A stretch of 63,999 bases of DNA, filler included, from Polymyxa betae A26-41 (GCA_003693705.1; 5 parts of 5 records of this genome joined end to end with filler, not necessarily neighbours in it), one strand, 5' to 3'; positions 56,194 through 61,720 are shown, counted from the whole stretch's first letter. Made by a program: numbers and translations. Notes: generated by a model from the sequence alone, not told the origin.

Positions 56194-56842
56194 ACCTGGG
56201 CCTTACGGTTTGGTAGAGGGGTACTGAACTAAGACGTTCAAGACATCCTACCCGAGGACAACCAGGTATTGGATGGGATTGTATCCACGGGCCGGCATAC
56301 AGTATCAAGGCAGATCGATTCTACTATTCAATTATCTGTCGCTAATTTGCGATCGTGAAATCTTCGACCTGATTTTCAGCCTAACCAGCTAACTGTCCAA
56401 CGTGACAAGAATACTGATGAAATAAAATTCGCTTTATCAAAATCAGGAAGAATATAAAAAAAAAACATTACTCGAGCGGGAATCGAACTCGGACTTTGCG
56501 ATTTGCCCTATCATTTGGCTATCTCTGATTCTGTCTGCAAAGCTACAGAATTGGAATTCAAAGAGGGCTTGCCGAAAAACCGCTAAACTTTCCTACGCCA
56601 AAATTGGTAAGGAGGTGTCGGGACACCAGATAAACGGATAGCTGGAAATAAGTTCCTAGAAAGTAAAAAAAAACACGTGTAGCAACCCTAAGGTTAGGGT
56701 TTATGAGATTTGAATAGTTCTCAAACCCATTTCCAGCACTGAATTTTGAATTTAAAGTGTTTATTACCCAAATTTACAGTACTATCGGTCTGAGAAGAAA
56801 AAAAAGCGAGTTTCATTCAAGAGCGAAGAAACGTTTCAGCGT

Positions 56843-58396
56843 TTAGGTTTCAGATGTTGTGTTACACTTGTGGTCGTCAAGTAATATCTGATAGATGAGG
56901 TTATCATGATCTCGGGCGATTTCAATGAGTTCCAGTTTGTGTATGAGCGGGATATTGACATAGAACGAATATTGTATGAGAGCACGGAACTGTTCTACAT
57001 ACTGACTTTTCATGAAGAATTTCAGAGCTGAAATTAGAGATGGAATGTCCCCAAGAATCAAAGAAACAAATTTCGGACTTTCCAGAAATCCGCGAACATT
57101 CGCATCCGATCGACAGCATAAAAGGTATTTAATAATATGCTTGATGCCGAGATTATCAGTTTTTGCAGCAAATAGAGAGATAGTCGGAATTCGCATCAGA
57201 GTCCGAGCAATATCGAAATGATGGTTAACAATGGCCCAATCCATTAGCGTACACCGATCGTGAATCCCATTGGAAAGTTTCACAAAAACCTGGAAATTGG
57301 CGATCCTGTGCATGAACGGAAGTGCGATCAGGCCCTCCAAAAACCCCTTCGATGCATTCAGCAACAGATTCGAGAAGTGGCAGAAATCGTCTTCCGGGAA
57401 TCTATCAAAAAATAATCGTTGAACGAACGGAATCCGCAACAGAGCCAGGGTTCTCTGCTCTCCAATATCTCCGGCGCTGATTAGATCACACGCAGTTAAC
57501 AGGATCTCGGACAGCGACGAGAAGTTCAACATAGGGACGATATCCGCCACGGACTCCGGCGAGATTTCCACATTCCTCATGTAAGAACGCAAGTCAAACA
57601 GAATGCCGTTCTGGCGCAGAGCCAGTACGGCCTGCCAGTTGGACAGCGGATGGGAATGTTTGCGCCGGAGATTGCGGATAGCACGGGAAATGTCCGTCTG
57701 CGAGTATGATGAGAACGTTTTCAGGACGGGTTCCTCGGCACGAATCCGATGACGAGGAGATCGACGGAAGCGCTGAATGAACGACGAAATGCGCCAGCTG
57801 CGCTTCGATTGAGGCCCTTTTTTATCCTCGAAACAACAGCTCAAATCCTCACAGCGATCATCTGGGATAGACTGAAGCGGAACCGATGTGATCAAGTCCG
57901 AAAATGCGAATTTCTCGTCCCAAAATTCGTCCCGATTATACAGCGATGTCTCATTCGTCAGAACAGAGAGGCCCAGCCTTGTGATCAAAATCCGTAACAG
58001 ATCGGATTTCTGTCCAGTCTTCAATGATTTGCTCGACATGATCTGGTGGTACAGGCCCAGGACCAGCTGCGGGCGTACAGCAGCGTCGACGTCCCGGGAT
58101 CCGGGGACGCGACGGACCAGCTCGTCCAGAATACGGATCAGCATGGGGATCACGGATTCCGAGATCGTCGGCGATTCGAACAGGGCGTGTACGACCCCGT
58201 GACGAAACGATGGCAGCCAGAGGCGGCATGCCCGAGTGAGATGGCACAATTCCGTGGGCGACCGGACGTGATCGCTCATGATCTTGAACTGGAGATCAGA
58301 GGGAAGAACCTCGAAATCGAAGGTCGTTTCATCGGCGGAGGCCGCACCCAGGACCAGTACGGTCACGGCCAGCAGAATCGCAACTCGGACGTACAT
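56843..58396 (-). CDS. Secreted F-box protein with C-terminal ankyrin-like/helical repeats (family B), intact and intronless
   Basis: Signal MYVRVAILLAVTVLVLGAASA. F-box-like FEVLPSDLQFKIMSDHVRSPTELCHLTRACRLW. Ankyrin-like TLMDWAIVNHHFDIARTLM. Confidence 0.8.
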   Translation of the reverse strand: MYVRVAILLAVTVLVLGAASADETTFDFEVLPSDLQFKIMSDHVRSPTELCHLTRACRLWLPSFRHGVVHALFESPTISESVIPMLIRILDELVRRVPGSRDVDAAVRPQLVLGLYHQIMSSKSLKTGQKSDLLRILITRLGLSVLTNETSLYNRDEFWDEKFAFSDLITSVPLQSIPDDRCEDLSCCFEDKKGPQSKRSWRISSFIQRFRRSPRHRIRAEEPVLKTFSSYSQTDISRAIRNLRRKHSHPLSNWQAVLALRQNGILFDLRSYMRNVEISPESVADIVPMLNFSSLSEILLTACDLISAGDIGEQRTLALLRIPFVQRLFFDRFPEDDFCHFSNLLLNASKGFLEGLIALPFMHRIANFQVFVKLSNGIHDRCTLMDWAIVNHHFDIARTLMRIPTISLFAAKTDNLGIKHIIKYLLCCRSDANVRGFLESPKFVSLILGDIPSLISALKFFMKSQYVEQFRALIQYSFYVNIPLIHKLELIEIARDHDNLIYQILLDDHKCNTTSET

Positions 58397-58599
58397 CGAC
58401 GTTGCAGACGGAGAGCGATTCGTGCTTTGGATCCTTCCCCATGTGTCACGAACTTCAACGGTCCTTCTGAGCAGTTTGCGCAGATTGTTTCCAAACTGGT
58501 CATAGACTCCGGCATGCGTAACTCATCCGCAACAACGACGATCGACCTCCCTGAGCCGGGTTCCCTGAGCCTTCATATCCTGACACTGACAGCGGTCGT

Positions 58600-58707
58600 A
58601 CTGAGCGTTCATATCCTGACACTGACAGCGGTCGTACTGGTCCTGAGGTCGGTATCATCTATAGCGCGGGACTCGGACCTCCGTCTTATCCCGGATCACA
58701 TCCAGCA
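58600..58707 (+). pseudogene. Truncated 5' relic of a family B gene (signal peptide + start of F-box), head-to-head with 56843-58396
   Basis: Translates SVHILTLTAVVLVLRSVSSIARDSDLRLIPDHIQQ, similar to the N-terminus at 61413. Preceded by a 36-bp duplication. Confidence 0.5.
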
Positions 58708-59075
58708 ATGTTTATTTCAAAATTCAGCAATAGGCTGAAAAACTCATTTGAGTTTCTTGAGAGTTTTCCGAGAATTGCGTAAAATATTTTCAATTCTGCA
58801 ATGTTCCATGACGGTAACAGAATCCAAAACTTGCTTTGCTGAGACACCGATCGCTCTTATGGATTATTGAGAGGCTTCATTGTTTAACAATTGTCCGAGC
58901 CGAGTGAGCATAAGTCACGCTTCTGATGATAATTGAGTTCCGAATACTGAGAGAGTCTACAGAGAGTTGTTGCTGAAGACGCATCGCTGTGATTTAGTCG
59001 AGATCATCGCAGTCTTGAGGCGCTCAATCCGTTCTCCTCCTCTGTGCAGCACTGCTTGAATCAAAACTTGAAATA

Positions 59076-59530
59076 CGAGATTGCGTGACTGACGCTGAAA
59101 ACCTTCAATTGAGAACAAGATAGTGCGTAATGACGCTAAAAAAAATTTTATGAGAAGAAGATTGTGCGTGACTGACACAGAAAGCTTTCCTTTGAGAAGA
59201 AGCATGTGCGTGATAGACTCAGAAAACTTTCAATTGGAAGACGATTGTGCGTGACTGACACAGAAAGCTTTCCTTTGAGAAGAAGCATGTGCGTGATAGA
59301 CTCAGAAAACTTTCAATTGAGAAGAAGATTGTGCGTGACTGACACAGAAAGCTNNNNNNNNNNNNNNNNNNNNNNNNNNNNNNNNNNNNNNNNNNNNNNN
59401 NNNNNNNNNNNNNNNNNNNNNNNNNNNNNNNNNNNNNNNNNNNNNNNNNNNNNNNNNNNNNNNNNNNNNNNNNNNNNNNNNNNNNNNNNNNGAAAGCTTT
59501 CCTTTGAGAGAAGATAGTGCGTGACTGTCA
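59076..59530 (+). repeat. Minisatellite of ~42-bp units (alternating A/B, ~84-bp dimer), partly unresolved (N-run)
   Basis: gagaagaagattgtgcgtgactgacacagaaagctttccttt alternates with gagaagaagcatgtgcgtgatagactcagaaaactttcaatt. Confidence 0.9.
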
Positions 59531-59663
59531 GACGAGAGTGTAGACTGTAGAGTCCATTTGTATCAAGTCGGCACAGCATCACCGTTCTATGCGAGATTGT
59601 AAGAGCAAGAGTGATAGAATTTATCTTACACAAAATCGGTTTAAGAAGAAAAAAACAAGAGTT

Positions 59664-60640
59664 TTATTCAAAAGTAAAAAAACGTTTCAGAGTTTGGATC
59701 CCAAATGGTGTTGGGGCGATGTTACTGTTGTCCGTGATATCTGATAAATGAACGCTTATCGTTGACCGTAATATCTGATAGATGAGGTCATCATGATCTC
59801 GGGCGATTTCAAGGATTTCCATTTTGTGTGTATACGGGATCATGATATAGAACGAATATTGTATGAGAGCACGGAACTGCTCTACATACTGACTTTTCAT
59901 ATAAAATGTCAGAATTGAAATCAGAGATGGAATATCCTCGAGTATCAGAGCAACAAATTCCGGACTTTCCAGAAATTCGCGAATATTCGCATCCGATCGA
60001 CAGCATACAAGACCTTCAATAACATGCTTGATGCCGGGATTGTCAGACATTTTCGAGTATAGAGATGCAGTCGGAACTCGCATCAAAGTCCGAGCCATAT
60101 CGACATTACGGTTAACAAATGGCCCAATCCATCAGAGTACAATCTTGGAGCGTCCCTTGAAGTTGCAGATAAAACTGGAAATTGACGATCGTGCGCATGA
60201 ACGGAAGTGCGACCAGGCCATCCAAGAGCACATTTGATGCAGTCAGCATCAGCGTCGTAAGGGCGTCGAAAACGTGCGGAGAGGAATCACGAATAATTCC
60301 TCGCTGGAAGAACGGAATCCGCAACAGAGCCAGCGCTCTCTGCTCTCCAGAAACTCCGCCGCGGATTAGATCACACGCTGTATACAAGACCTCAGACGGT
60401 GAAGAGATGTCCAACATAGGGACGATATCCGCCACGGACTCGGGCGAGACGTCGACATTTAGCATGTAAATCTGCAACTGAAACACGATGCCGTACTGGC
60501 GCAGAGCCAGTACGACGCACCAATCGGCGAGCGGATGGGAATGTTTGGGGAAAGCGATCAGGAGATTGACGGCAGGACCCCCGACGGCGTCCGAATGCAG
60601 GAAACAGAACGGAGCGGGGTAACGTTGACGGAGTGCGCAG
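59664..60640 (-). pseudogene. 5'-truncated, frameshifted paralog of 56843-58396
   Basis: KHSHPL..W..VLALRQ.GI.F, SPESVADIVPML, CTLMDWAI and MKSQYVEQFRALIQYSFY are shared. Frameshift at about 60110. Signal peptide and F-box are missing. Confidence 0.85.
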
Positions 60641-60759
60641 AGGGGGTCCTCGTCCTGAGCTGTTTTTTTTTGCATATTTTTCCAAACACTACGTGAAGGC
60701 CGCTCCGGCTTTCGTCACTACGACTCTCTCAACAACGCTCGACCTCCTTGAGTCGGCTA

Positions 60760-60866
60760 CCTGAGCGCTCATTAGCTGACACTGACAGCGGTCGTACTGG
60801 TCCTGAGGTCGGTATCATCTGTGGCGCGGAACTCGGACCTCCATCTTGTCCCGGATCACATCCAGC
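60760..60866 (+). pseudogene. Second copy of the truncated family B 5' relic
   Basis: Near-identical to 58600-58707 (ctgacactgacagcggtcgtactggtcctgaggtcggtatcatct...cccggatcacatccagc). Confidence 0.5.
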
Positions 60867-61412
60867 CCGGGTATTCTTCTTGTGGTTGAATGAGATTTTT
60901 CGGATCTATTGATGATCCGGAATCTGCGTGATTCAAATGCCTCTTCCGGGTCTTCAGTGTTACCTCTCGTTTCGGATCTAATAAAGGGATTGGGCCGGCC
61001 TCATTTCACCACAAGTATCCTAACATCTCTTTTAGTATCGTTCTATTTAAACCGCTCTCTTGCGTCTCCGACATCGTGTTCAACAGATTGAGCAGTTTTG
61101 AGAAATTCCCGAGAAATTTCACTGGAATGCCGTAAAACAGGTTTTAGATTCAATTGTGGAAATCATAGAACAGCAGAATTTGCAGAATCAAACATGCTGC
61201 GAAACTCTGTTTGGGCAGAACCAGTTTATAATCAATAACGGAAATTTGACATCTATGACTGCGAATCCACACCTTCAAACTCTGGGTTTCAGCTCAGGCT
61301 CAGTCGCAGTATTTTTCGCAGCAACTTGGAAAAAAGTGCGTTACAACGCCGTACGCAGGGTTCCGTAACTTGACCGCTGCCATTCCCTGACGCCATTCCC
61401 ATTTCCACTACG

Positions 61413-61720
61413 ATGTACGTCCAGGTCCTGGTCCTGATGGCTGCAGCCGTACTGGGCCTGGGGGAGGCGGCCTCCTCGGCAGAGCCCGAATGCGGGTTCG
61501 ATCGTGTCCCGGATGAGATTCTGGAGTTGATCGTGGCCGGCATCTCCGCCGCCACGGACTTGGGACGTCTGAGTCTGACCTGCCGCCGCCTGCTTCCTCT
61601 GGGCCGTCCCCAGGTCGTACAGGCCCTGTTCGAATCGCCCACGATTTCGGACTATCAGATCCACGACCTGGTCCGTATCGTTGCCGTCCAAGTGCGATAC
61701 GACCGCGAGACCGTCGCGCT
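61413..61720 (+). CDS. Secreted F-box protein family B, 5' part (runs into gap)
   Basis: Signal MYVQVLVLMAAAVLGLGEAASS. F-box-like FDRVPDEILELIVAGISAATDLGRLSLTCRRL. VV.ALFESPTIS is shared with 56843-58396. Confidence 0.8.

Follow-up and report, generated by a model that had tools for sequence, protein, structure and literature searches.

The window (the whole stretch of DNA analysed, 63,999 nucleotides with filler included) contains a cluster of related genes and gene remnants whose intact member combines a predicted signal peptide, an N-terminal F-box-like motif and a C-terminal domain of alpha-helical repeats (Table 1). The layout is that of a head-to-head and tandem birth-and-death cluster with segmental duplication and decayed copies, and the family is nearly orphan and fast-evolving. 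Tentatively, we consider it possible that these genes encode secreted F-box-like proteins that co-opt the SCF ligase of a host in the manner of SSGP-71, with an unrelated target-binding domain. In such a model, the protein would be exported via the secretory pathway by an organism living on or in another cell and would arrive in the host cytosol, where the F-box-like module would bind the SKP1-CUL1 of the host and the helical repeats would pick host proteins for ubiquitination. Skp1 binding, delivery into a host and, indeed, the existence of a host at all are inferred. A first-pass annotation of this DNA had proposed a secreted SCF adaptor; the signal-peptide-like N-terminus with an F-box-like motif in two paralogues, the fast evolution and the near-orphan status all speak for that proposal, whereas the F-box scores are sub-threshold and the ankyrin component is unsupported.

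Table 1. Features of the gene cluster (positions counted from the first nucleotide of the window)
Feature	Position	Strand	Evidence
3′ end and 3′ flank of gene 1	56784..56860	-	Direct repeat D8; 78% identical to paralogue 2 at 59635-59711
Gene 1	56843..58396	-	ORF list, paralogue alignments, exhaustive phmmer matches P0001 (E 2.7e-20) and P0002 (E 1.1e-10)
Conserved family domain, gene 1 codons 246-510, all-alpha helical-hairpin repeats	56867..57661	-	AlphaFold2 on alignment A5
F-box-like motif, gene 1 codons 29-60 (LPSDL..KI....V.....EL..L..ACRLW)	58217..58312	-	Pfam PF12937, sub-threshold
Predicted cleavable signal peptide, gene 1 codons 1-21	58334..58396	-	Hydropathy and charge layout; MYVR / VAILLAVTVLVLG / AASA, then DE
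Stub 1 (tentative), decayed 5′ remnant of a family member	58559..58738	+	Inverted repeat I2 to gene 1 signal-peptide codons; translation
Minisatellite between genes; each 83-nt unit comprises two 42-nt half-units	59082..59530	.	Tandem Repeats Finder; repeat family D4
Paralogue 2, truncated and broken copy	59664..60675	-	Two ORF pieces, 60112-60675 and 59664-60098
Stub 2 (tentative), same type of remnant as stub 1	60755..60870	+	Direct repeats D6 and D7, inverted repeat I3; translation
Gene 3, 5′ part of a paralogue cut by the piece edge; F-box-like motif at 61500-61592	61413..61720	+	PF12937, alignment A3

Gene 1 is the intact intronless gene that had been annotated initially: a single uninterrupted ORF of 517 aa. 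The chance of 517 stop-free codons at the local composition is approximately 1e-11 by an arithmetic estimate, and an AATAAA lies approximately 80 nt downstream of the stop codon. The encoded protein consists, in order, of the signal peptide, the F-box-like motif, a helical extension, a basic low-confidence linker and the alpha-helical repeat domain. In the N-terminal sequence, MYVRVAILLAVTVLVLGAASA/DE, the n-region is basic, the hydrophobic core spans 13 residues (Kyte-Doolittle mean 3.0), and four acidic residues come after an A-x-A site. The signal-peptide call was made by inspection and hydropathy only, on the basis of an n-region, an h-region of 7-15 residues and small residues at -3 and -1, all of which gene 1 has. 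Gene 3 begins with a similar signal peptide (aa 1-24; 13 of 22 residues in common), but its n-region has no basic residue. The signal peptide claimed for the start of both genes was confirmed as a prediction, with a classical-looking layout in each. The predicted peptides would be cleaved and the proteins secreted, and the acidic flank on the far side of the core speaks for translocation of the part C-terminal to it.

This arrangement bears on the idea that the family is an endogenous set of F-box proteins with substrates of their own, like the families of nematodes and plants, in which the hydrophobic N-terminus would be a membrane anchor or another targeting signal. Nematodes and plants have large, fast-evolving F-box families, and families that are large, tandem, fast-evolving and rich in pseudogenes occur in free-living eukaryotes. 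However, the hydrophobic core measures a mere 13 residues, and the basic residue before it, together with the A-x-A and the four acidic residues after it, points to a cleaved signal or to an F-box on the lumenal side, not to a cytosol-facing anchor. The family is also missing from every annotated proteome searched, and an endogenous role appears quite unlikely.

The F-box-like motif of the proposed secreted adaptors begins 8-9 residues past the predicted cleavage site in both gene 1 and gene 3. To our knowledge, the F-box has no use in the secretory lumen. PF12937 (F-box-like) is the sole Pfam match of gene 1, at aa 29-60, with 17.5 bits and E 0.0037 for the whole protein, and 18.7 bits and E 0.0015 for the N-terminal half alone; it is also the best Pfam match of gene 3 (aa 30-60; 21.8 bits, E 1.6e-4), which scores 14.6 bits against PF00646 (F-box). 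The Pfam gathering scores are 24.3 for PF12937 and 20.5 for PF00646, and neither gene reaches that of an F-box family, so the initial report of an F-box right after the signal peptide holds for the position, which is the same in both genes, but not at the gathering threshold. The PF12937 E-values (1.6e-4 to 3.7e-3) are suggestive only. Alignment A3 places the F-box core positions in both proteins, namely L-P, acidic plus I/L, spaced hydrophobics and C-[RK]-x-[WL] in helix 3 (gene 1, LPSDL..KI...V....EL..L..ACRLW; gene 3, VPDEI..LI...I....DL..L..TCRRL), and each may adopt a true F-box fold.

Sub-threshold scores of this kind are also what would be seen if the F-box likeness were fortuitous. In that case, the N-terminal helices would simply open a helical protein particular to this family, secreted or at the surface, whose function lies outside the cell or along the secretory pathway and is unconnected with SCF. 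Weak matches come easily to a short motif with many leucines and helix formers; among solved structures, a profile of the two N-termini retrieved designed helical repeats (E ~1) and no protein with an F-box; and the mature part carries 11 cysteines and four N-glycosylation sequons. Yet the F-box-like family is the sole or top Pfam match, at the same position, in two paralogues that share their layout at just 44% identity (over 96 aa), and there is conservation at the diagnostic L-P, acidic, I/L and C-R positions. An ESM feature search with gene 1 aa 22-140 independently ranked F-box clusters first and placed them in the top three, at a weak 0.81-0.86. MAFFT misalignments had suggested that the F-box-like module was a copy of the C-terminal repeat; this was rejected on an hhalign probability of 0.3%, and the distinctness of the N-terminal module from the repeats likewise argues against a chance likeness. 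The single-sequence AlphaFold2 model is unreliable at the N-terminus, with pLDDT of 33-42, below 50, over aa 20-70. We regard a fortuitous likeness as doubtful; were it real, this would be an ordinary lineage-specific secreted gene family.

For the secreted-adaptor reading, the domain of interest as a target binder is the C-terminal one. Folding was confined to A5, the clean alignment of the C-terminal domain; the full-length alignments A4 and A6-A8 were dropped because fragments were misplaced in them. The resulting AlphaFold2 model has a mean pLDDT of 68.6, with gene 1 aa 250-370 at 85-93, and shows helical hairpins that repeat every ~25-30 aa. The ankyrin-like repeats of the first-pass annotation could not be substantiated: ankyrin HMMs (PF00023, PF12796 and relatives) gave no Pfam match at E <= 10 with either the whole protein or the C-terminal 268 aa, and fold searches returned generic helical repeats. 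The C-terminal domain had no Pfam match of any kind, LRR included. Foldseek found no PDB fold match to the model at E <= 0.001 (the best were MO25 and armadillo, at TM ~0.3), and the highest Z from VIA-align was 7.5, its matches being nothing more specific than generic helical repeats. A fold search of the ESM Atlas returned one ankyrin cluster at TM 0.48, and whole-protein language-model features lean towards ankyrin at low recognition. The model is consistent with a generic alpha-helical repeat of roughly 270 aa that is specific to the family.

The copies differ greatly in their state of preservation. The description of an expanding family is right in that there are several copies, but only gene 1 is demonstrably intact in the piece, alongside one edge-cut copy, one that is truncated and frame-changed, and two tentative 5′ stubs. 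Paralogue 2 changes reading frame near 60116-60118 and is without the entire counterpart of gene 1 aa 1-245, signal peptide and F-box included; it was kept unrepaired and was searched as separate pieces only. Over the ungapped DNA repeats D1, D2 and D5, whose copies lie 2885-2887 nt apart, it matches gene 1 at 78-84% identity, and the duplicated unit extends to the conserved 3′ end and flank. Stub 1, head-to-head with gene 1, reads ..LTLTAVVLVLRSVSSIARDSDLRLIPDHIQQ.. and contains a 36-nt internal duplication (tandem repeat 58565-58639); it is below the length that tblastn can find. Stub 2 is 92% identical to stub 1 and lies head-to-head with paralogue 2, and both stubs are devoid of a start codon. 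An assembly gap (59354-59491) falls inside the minisatellite, whose array occupies 59082-59353 and resumes at 59492-59530 as a D4 copy, with no gene touched. Two ORFs across this gap, 59206-59517 (plus) and 59313-59633 (minus), were rejected as artefacts of reading through N, and scans of the piece for tRNA and Rfam families found nothing.

The truncation and frame change of paralogue 2 and the absent start codons of the stubs would fit a decaying, non-functional repeat family, its pseudogenes spread by segmental duplication and gene 1 intact only through youth. The dN/dS values between copies range from 0.63 to 0.96: paralogue 2 against gene 1 gave 0.96, in the central region, and 0.63, and values of 0.63-0.68 apply to the other segments and to gene 1 against gene 3. 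A dN/dS near 1 is expected of decaying genes too, and the central-region value, like the interruption of both relatives in a Beta assembly (described below), agrees with decay. Effector families are often fast-evolving and nearly orphan. Decay of the whole family is nevertheless very unlikely in our view, as the 517 codons of gene 1 stay open, dN/dS falls to the lower values outside the central region, and the core domain is 37-41% identical to distant relatives and has a confidently modelled fold.

The near-orphan status of the putative adaptors emerged from searches of several kinds. An exhaustive phmmer search of 1.84 billion representative proteins found only two relatives, P0001 and P0002, both of them fragments from contigs of 1.1 kb that are filed under Beta vulgaris (AYZY01066425 and AYZY01065298). 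Both are interrupted, L001 by a change of frame and L002 by an in-frame stop. A family-profile search found only P0002, and P0001 as a query found only itself. Gene 1 had no match among 5.8 billion proteins in a word-indexed search, and its best PDB sequence match had E = 2; NCBIfam yielded no match either. Back-translated scans of JGI metagenomes, IMG/VR viral contigs and GTDB bacterial and archaeal genomes detected no relative; a bacterial or giant-virus origin is therefore without support, despite giant-virus ankyrin clusters in the feature search.

Host SCF hijacking by this family is a reasonable reading that would have a direct precedent in SSGP-71, which combines a signal peptide with an F-box and binds wheat Skp. 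The SSGP-71 proteins of the Hessian fly (Mayetiola destructor) are secreted eukaryotic F-box effectors, members of which are reported to associate with a Skp1-like protein of wheat (Zhao et al. 2015, via PMC4617103 and PMC10317074). SSGP-71 resembles the present family in being eukaryotic, in having a signal peptide, an N-terminal F-box (here F-box-like) and a C-terminal repeat domain, and in forming a large, fast-evolving family with some members that have no F-box; it differs in carrying ~13 leucine-rich repeats, whereas the all-alpha C-terminal domain here matches neither LRR nor any other Pfam family. The comparison is by description. The exhaustive search of 1.84 billion representatives found no insect homologue, and the likeness would be one of mechanism, not membership. 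With this precedent, the novelty of a 'convergent eukaryotic version' of SCF hijacking had been overstated. It is somewhat unlikely that the cluster represents a new, sequence-unrelated family of secreted F-box adaptors from a plant-associated eukaryote, with a new alpha-helical target-binding domain, and hence a second independent case, after SSGP-71, of eukaryotic host-SCF mimicry delivered by a signal peptide. If the proteins are exported and bind SKP1, secreted F-box mimicry would have arisen more than once in eukaryotic parasites, each time with a different target-recognition domain, and the family would supply a new helical-repeat scaffold with which host targets could be sought.

Other systems resemble the family in part. 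Legionella AnkB, Orientia Ank and the poxvirus ankyrin/PRANC proteins likewise join an F-box or F-box-like module to a helical repeat domain and co-opt host SCF ligases, a parallel already drawn in the first-pass annotation, but they reach the host through type IV or type I secretion from bacteria or by synthesis directly in its cytosol, whereas a eukaryotic signal peptide is predicted here; they have true ankyrin repeats, which are undetectable here, and the F-box-like PRANC domain of poxviruses is C-terminal instead of N-terminal. The RipG/GALA proteins of Ralstonia solanacearum act as mimics of F-box proteins of the host and associate with SKP1-like proteins of Arabidopsis (PMC4617103); they share an N-terminal F-box and a repeat domain with the family, but belong to the type III effectors of bacteria, carry LRRs and have no sequence relationship to it. 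Among eukaryotes, the plasmodiophorids Plasmodiophora and Spongospora have secreted ankyrin-repeat proteins, 17 of which also have a domain of the SKP1/BTB/POZ type, which is linked to ubiquitination (PMC12503489). These combine a signal peptide with helical repeats and are expanded in an intracellular eukaryotic plant parasite, but their ankyrin repeats are recognisable and PMC12503489 does not mention an F-box; no plasmodiophorid protein was matched among the 1.84 billion representatives.

The two Beta-filed contigs resemble the window in composition, with CpG observed/expected of 0.92-1.13 and TpA of ~0.4-0.6; both favour CGN for arginine and TCG for serine, and CpG is not depleted. Set against the general composition of plant nuclear DNA, the undepleted CpG and the CGN/TCG preference led us to reject a plant nuclear source for the contigs and the window alike. 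Polymyxa betae was considered but not adopted as the source, although its GC content of 45.1% would be compatible (PMC6328671). The composition suggests a plant-associated contaminant, and AYZY01066425 and AYZY01065298, although deposited as sugar-beet genome, probably belong to another organism.

Five sequences in the piece at positions 56194-61720 are related to a single gene family, and they range from a complete gene to candidate short remnants (see table). The first-pass annotation had proposed an intact gene at the first of these loci, and gene 1 can indeed be read through its whole length without interruption. Gene 3 shares 44% identity with it across 96 residues. Paralog 2 shows 60-72% identity to the corresponding part of gene 1, but its reading frame switches near 60116-60118, and any counterpart of gene 1 residues 1-245 is wholly absent. 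DNA comparison identified paralog 2 as a segmental duplicate (78-84% identity to gene 1, spacing 2885-2887 nt), with a match that extends into approximately 60 nt of the 3′ flank. Searches and alignments treated its two pieces as separate sequences, with no joining or repair. The remaining two sequences, short plus-strand segments 92% identical to each other, each lie head-to-head with a minus-strand copy; in translation, a hydrophobic run precedes ..DSDLRLIPDHIQ... We tentatively regard these as decayed 5′ stubs of more family members, retaining a putative signal peptide and the start of an F-box; neither was recovered by tblastn, as both fall below its detectable length. Opposite the GC-rich 5′ end of gene 1, on the antisense strand, lies a 230 aa ORF that extends in the same frame into stub 1; most likely it merely reflects high GC and is no gene.

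Family copies, neighbouring features and outside relatives.
Feature	Position	Strand	Description
Gene 1	56843-58396	minus	uninterrupted ORF, 517 codons
Stub 1	58559-58738	plus	candidate decayed 5′ stub
Paralog 2	59664-60675	minus	two-frame copy matching gene 1 residues 246-505
Stub 2	60755-60870	plus	candidate decayed 5′ stub
Gene 3	61413 onward	plus	5′ part of a paralog (102 codons), truncated by the edge of the piece
Antisense ORF	58046-58738	plus	230 aa, most likely no gene
tRNA-like stretch	56462-56560	reverse	resembles a tRNA T-arm end
Minisatellite array	59082-59353		further copy at 59492-59530
Assembly gap	59354-59491		inside the minisatellite array
L001	AYZY01066425.1, 1-1101		deposited as Beta vulgaris
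L002	AYZY01065298.1, 1-1190		deposited as Beta vulgaris

The N-terminus of gene 1 reads MYVR, VAILLAVTVLVLG and AASA, followed by DETTFDFE. In it, a basic n-region leads into a hydrophobic core of 13 residues (mean Kyte-Doolittle 3.0); positions -3 and -1 hold small residues, and the flank is acidic. Gene 3 repeats this layout apart from an n-region that lacks any basic residue. Because the core of gene 1 is short by membrane-anchor standards and the arrangement of charges favours passage of the C-terminal side across the membrane, a predicted cleaved signal peptide is the best reading by inspection. The same features bear on an alternative in which the family consists of endogenous F-box proteins held by an N-terminal anchor; the short core and the charges speak against such an anchor, and we consider this alternative unlikely.

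An F-box-like motif begins 8-9 residues past the predicted cleavage site. The only Pfam match of gene 1 is PF12937 (F-box-like) at aa 29-60, scoring 17.5 bits (E 0.0037) when the full-length protein is searched and 18.7 bits (E 0.0015) when only its N-terminal half is. Gene 3, too, has PF12937 as its best match (aa 30-60, 21.8 bits, E 1.6e-4), and it matches PF00646 as well at 14.6 bits. None of the F-box matches in either gene reaches its Pfam gathering score (24.3 for PF12937, 20.5 for PF00646). The order of elements described in the first-pass annotation, a predicted signal peptide and then an F-box-like motif, stands as a layout in both genes. Both genes, at 44% overall identity, keep the diagnostic F-box positions: L/V-P, an acidic residue with I/L, spaced hydrophobic residues and C-R-x-W/L. 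A language-model feature search with gene 1 aa 22-140 placed F-box clusters in its top three positions, with values of 0.81-0.86 that lie in the lead-only range. No F-box protein was found when a profile of the gene 1 and gene 3 N-termini was searched against solved structures, and single-sequence AlphaFold2 gave an unreliable model of the region (pLDDT 33-42). On balance, the motif is probably a true, divergent F-box. A secreted family in which the F-box resemblance is merely fortuitous would sit well with the sub-gathering scores and the negative profile search, and less well with the positions kept in both genes; we judge it a doubtful explanation, to be taken seriously.

The C-terminal domain had been described as ankyrin-like, a claim that the Pfam search did not confirm: neither ankyrin nor any other family matched the domain in gene 1, even at E ≤ 10. 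Folding of gene 1 residues 230-517 with the clean six-row C-terminal family alignment A5 gave a model in which helical hairpins recur every 25-30 residues or so, with a mean pLDDT of 68.6 and a confident core at residues ~250-370 (pLDDT 85-93). Foldseek found no PDB match to this model at E ≤ 0.001, its best rows being MO25 and designed armadillo proteins at TM ~0.3. A Foldseek-independent search reached a top Z of 7.5, in the range common among helical repeats, and matched the confident core to TOG, B56 and Get4-type solenoids. In the ESM Atlas shape search all matches fell short of TM 0.5, with one ankyrin cluster at 0.48. Whole-protein language-model features lean to ankyrin clusters (0.92-0.95) with low recognition, and by eye a few gene 1 segments, such as CTLMDWAIVNHHFDIARTLMRIP, resemble degenerate ankyrin repeats. 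A fair description of the modelled domain is a family-specific alpha-solenoid, not demonstrably ankyrin.

We also considered whether the N-terminal module is a copy of the C-terminal domain, and rejected this, as hhalign found no significant similarity between the N- and C-profiles. A short motif, ESP/SPE followed by a hydrophobic pattern and I.P.L, occurs three times in gene 1 (aa 73-92, 278-297 and 437-458) and repeatedly misled MAFFT. The poorly modelled linker at aa 196-249 (57650-57811) carries basic clusters, ..KRSWRISSFIQRFRRSPRHRIR.. and ..RNLRRKH.., that look like putative nuclear localization signals.

The best-supported reading, which we hold tentatively and at somewhat short of an even chance, is that the protein would be secreted by its producer, that its F-box-like module would engage SKP1 inside a host cell, and that the solenoid would pick the targets. 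The first-pass annotation had presented this as a convergent eukaryotic version of a bacterial and poxviral strategy, but the concept is already known in eukaryotes from SSGP-71, the Hessian fly (Mayetiola destructor) effector family, in which the F-box, absent from some members, is followed by approximately 13 LRRs (PMC4617103, PMC10317074). The likeness lies in the working mode on paper; the family described here has an all-alpha domain without LRRs, and is hence similar to SSGP-71 without being a member. No insect homologue was found. SCF mimicry is likewise the principle behind Legionella AnkB, the Orientia Anks, poxvirus ankyrin/PRANC proteins and Ralstonia RipG, which differ from this family in their delivery routes and their recognizable repeats. 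In plasmodiophorid secretomes, ankyrin proteins are abundant, some with SKP1/BTB/POZ-type domains (PMC12503489).

The family is nearly an orphan. Only P0001 (E 2.7e-20) and P0002 (E 1.1e-10) emerged as true relatives from exhaustive phmmer searching of 1.84 billion representative proteins; a third match (E 2e-4) was rejected as a repetitive bacterial protein aligning to a different stretch. JGI metagenomes, IMG/VR and GTDB genomes yielded no relative. P0001 and P0002 each form a cluster of their own, carry the annotation of a partial hypothetical protein from Beta vulgaris, and come from contigs of 1101 and 1190 nt in assembly GCA_000510975.1 (L001 and L002). Each contig begins mid-gene, around the equivalent of gene 1 residue 139. 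In L001 the reading frame changes near positions 900-924, beyond which the C-terminal-domain match continues; L002 is interrupted by an in-frame stop near position 70 and loses similarity past the core.

In composition, CpG depletion is absent (observed/expected 1.0-1.3), TpA is strongly depleted (~0.5), and CGN arginine, TCG serine and CTG leucine codons are favoured; both contigs carry the same signature. Undepleted CpG, low TpA and such codon preference are unlike plant nuclear DNA. Because their CpG is undepleted and their composition resembles that of the window, L001 and L002 are probably contaminants, from an organism carried on or within the plant material used for sequencing and related to the source of the window; this is a hint, short of proof, at a plant-associated owner of the family. 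The GC content of Polymyxa betae, 45.1% (PMC6328671), is compatible.

Nei-Gojobori dN/dS between gene 1 and paralog 2 was 0.96 for the central domain and 0.63 for the C-terminal part, and between gene 1 and gene 3 it was 0.68; with few sequences, these values fit a rapidly diversifying effector-like family and relaxed constraint in decaying copies equally well. A decaying repeat family without function would accommodate the frame changes, the in-frame stop and the candidate stubs, set against the intact gene 1 and the lower of the dN/dS values, and we regard it as quite improbable. Third-position GC in gene 1 (56846-58396) falls steeply from 0.73 to 0.38 in the 5′-to-3′ direction, and the same downward trend in GC occurs in 59667-60675, 61413-61718 and L001; recombination or gene conversion biased to 5′ ends is one possibility.

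A minisatellite lies in the intergenic stretch that separates stub 1 from the 3′ end of paralog 2; its 83 nt unit consists of two 42 nt halves with the core ..TGTGCGTGACTGACACAGAAAGCTTTC... No gene crosses the assembly gap within it, and two ORFs listed across the gap were rejected as artefacts of reading through N. ARAGORN and Rfam made no call for the tRNA-like stretch (..GTTCGATTCCCGCTCGAG), which may be the remnant of a tRNA-derived SINE.
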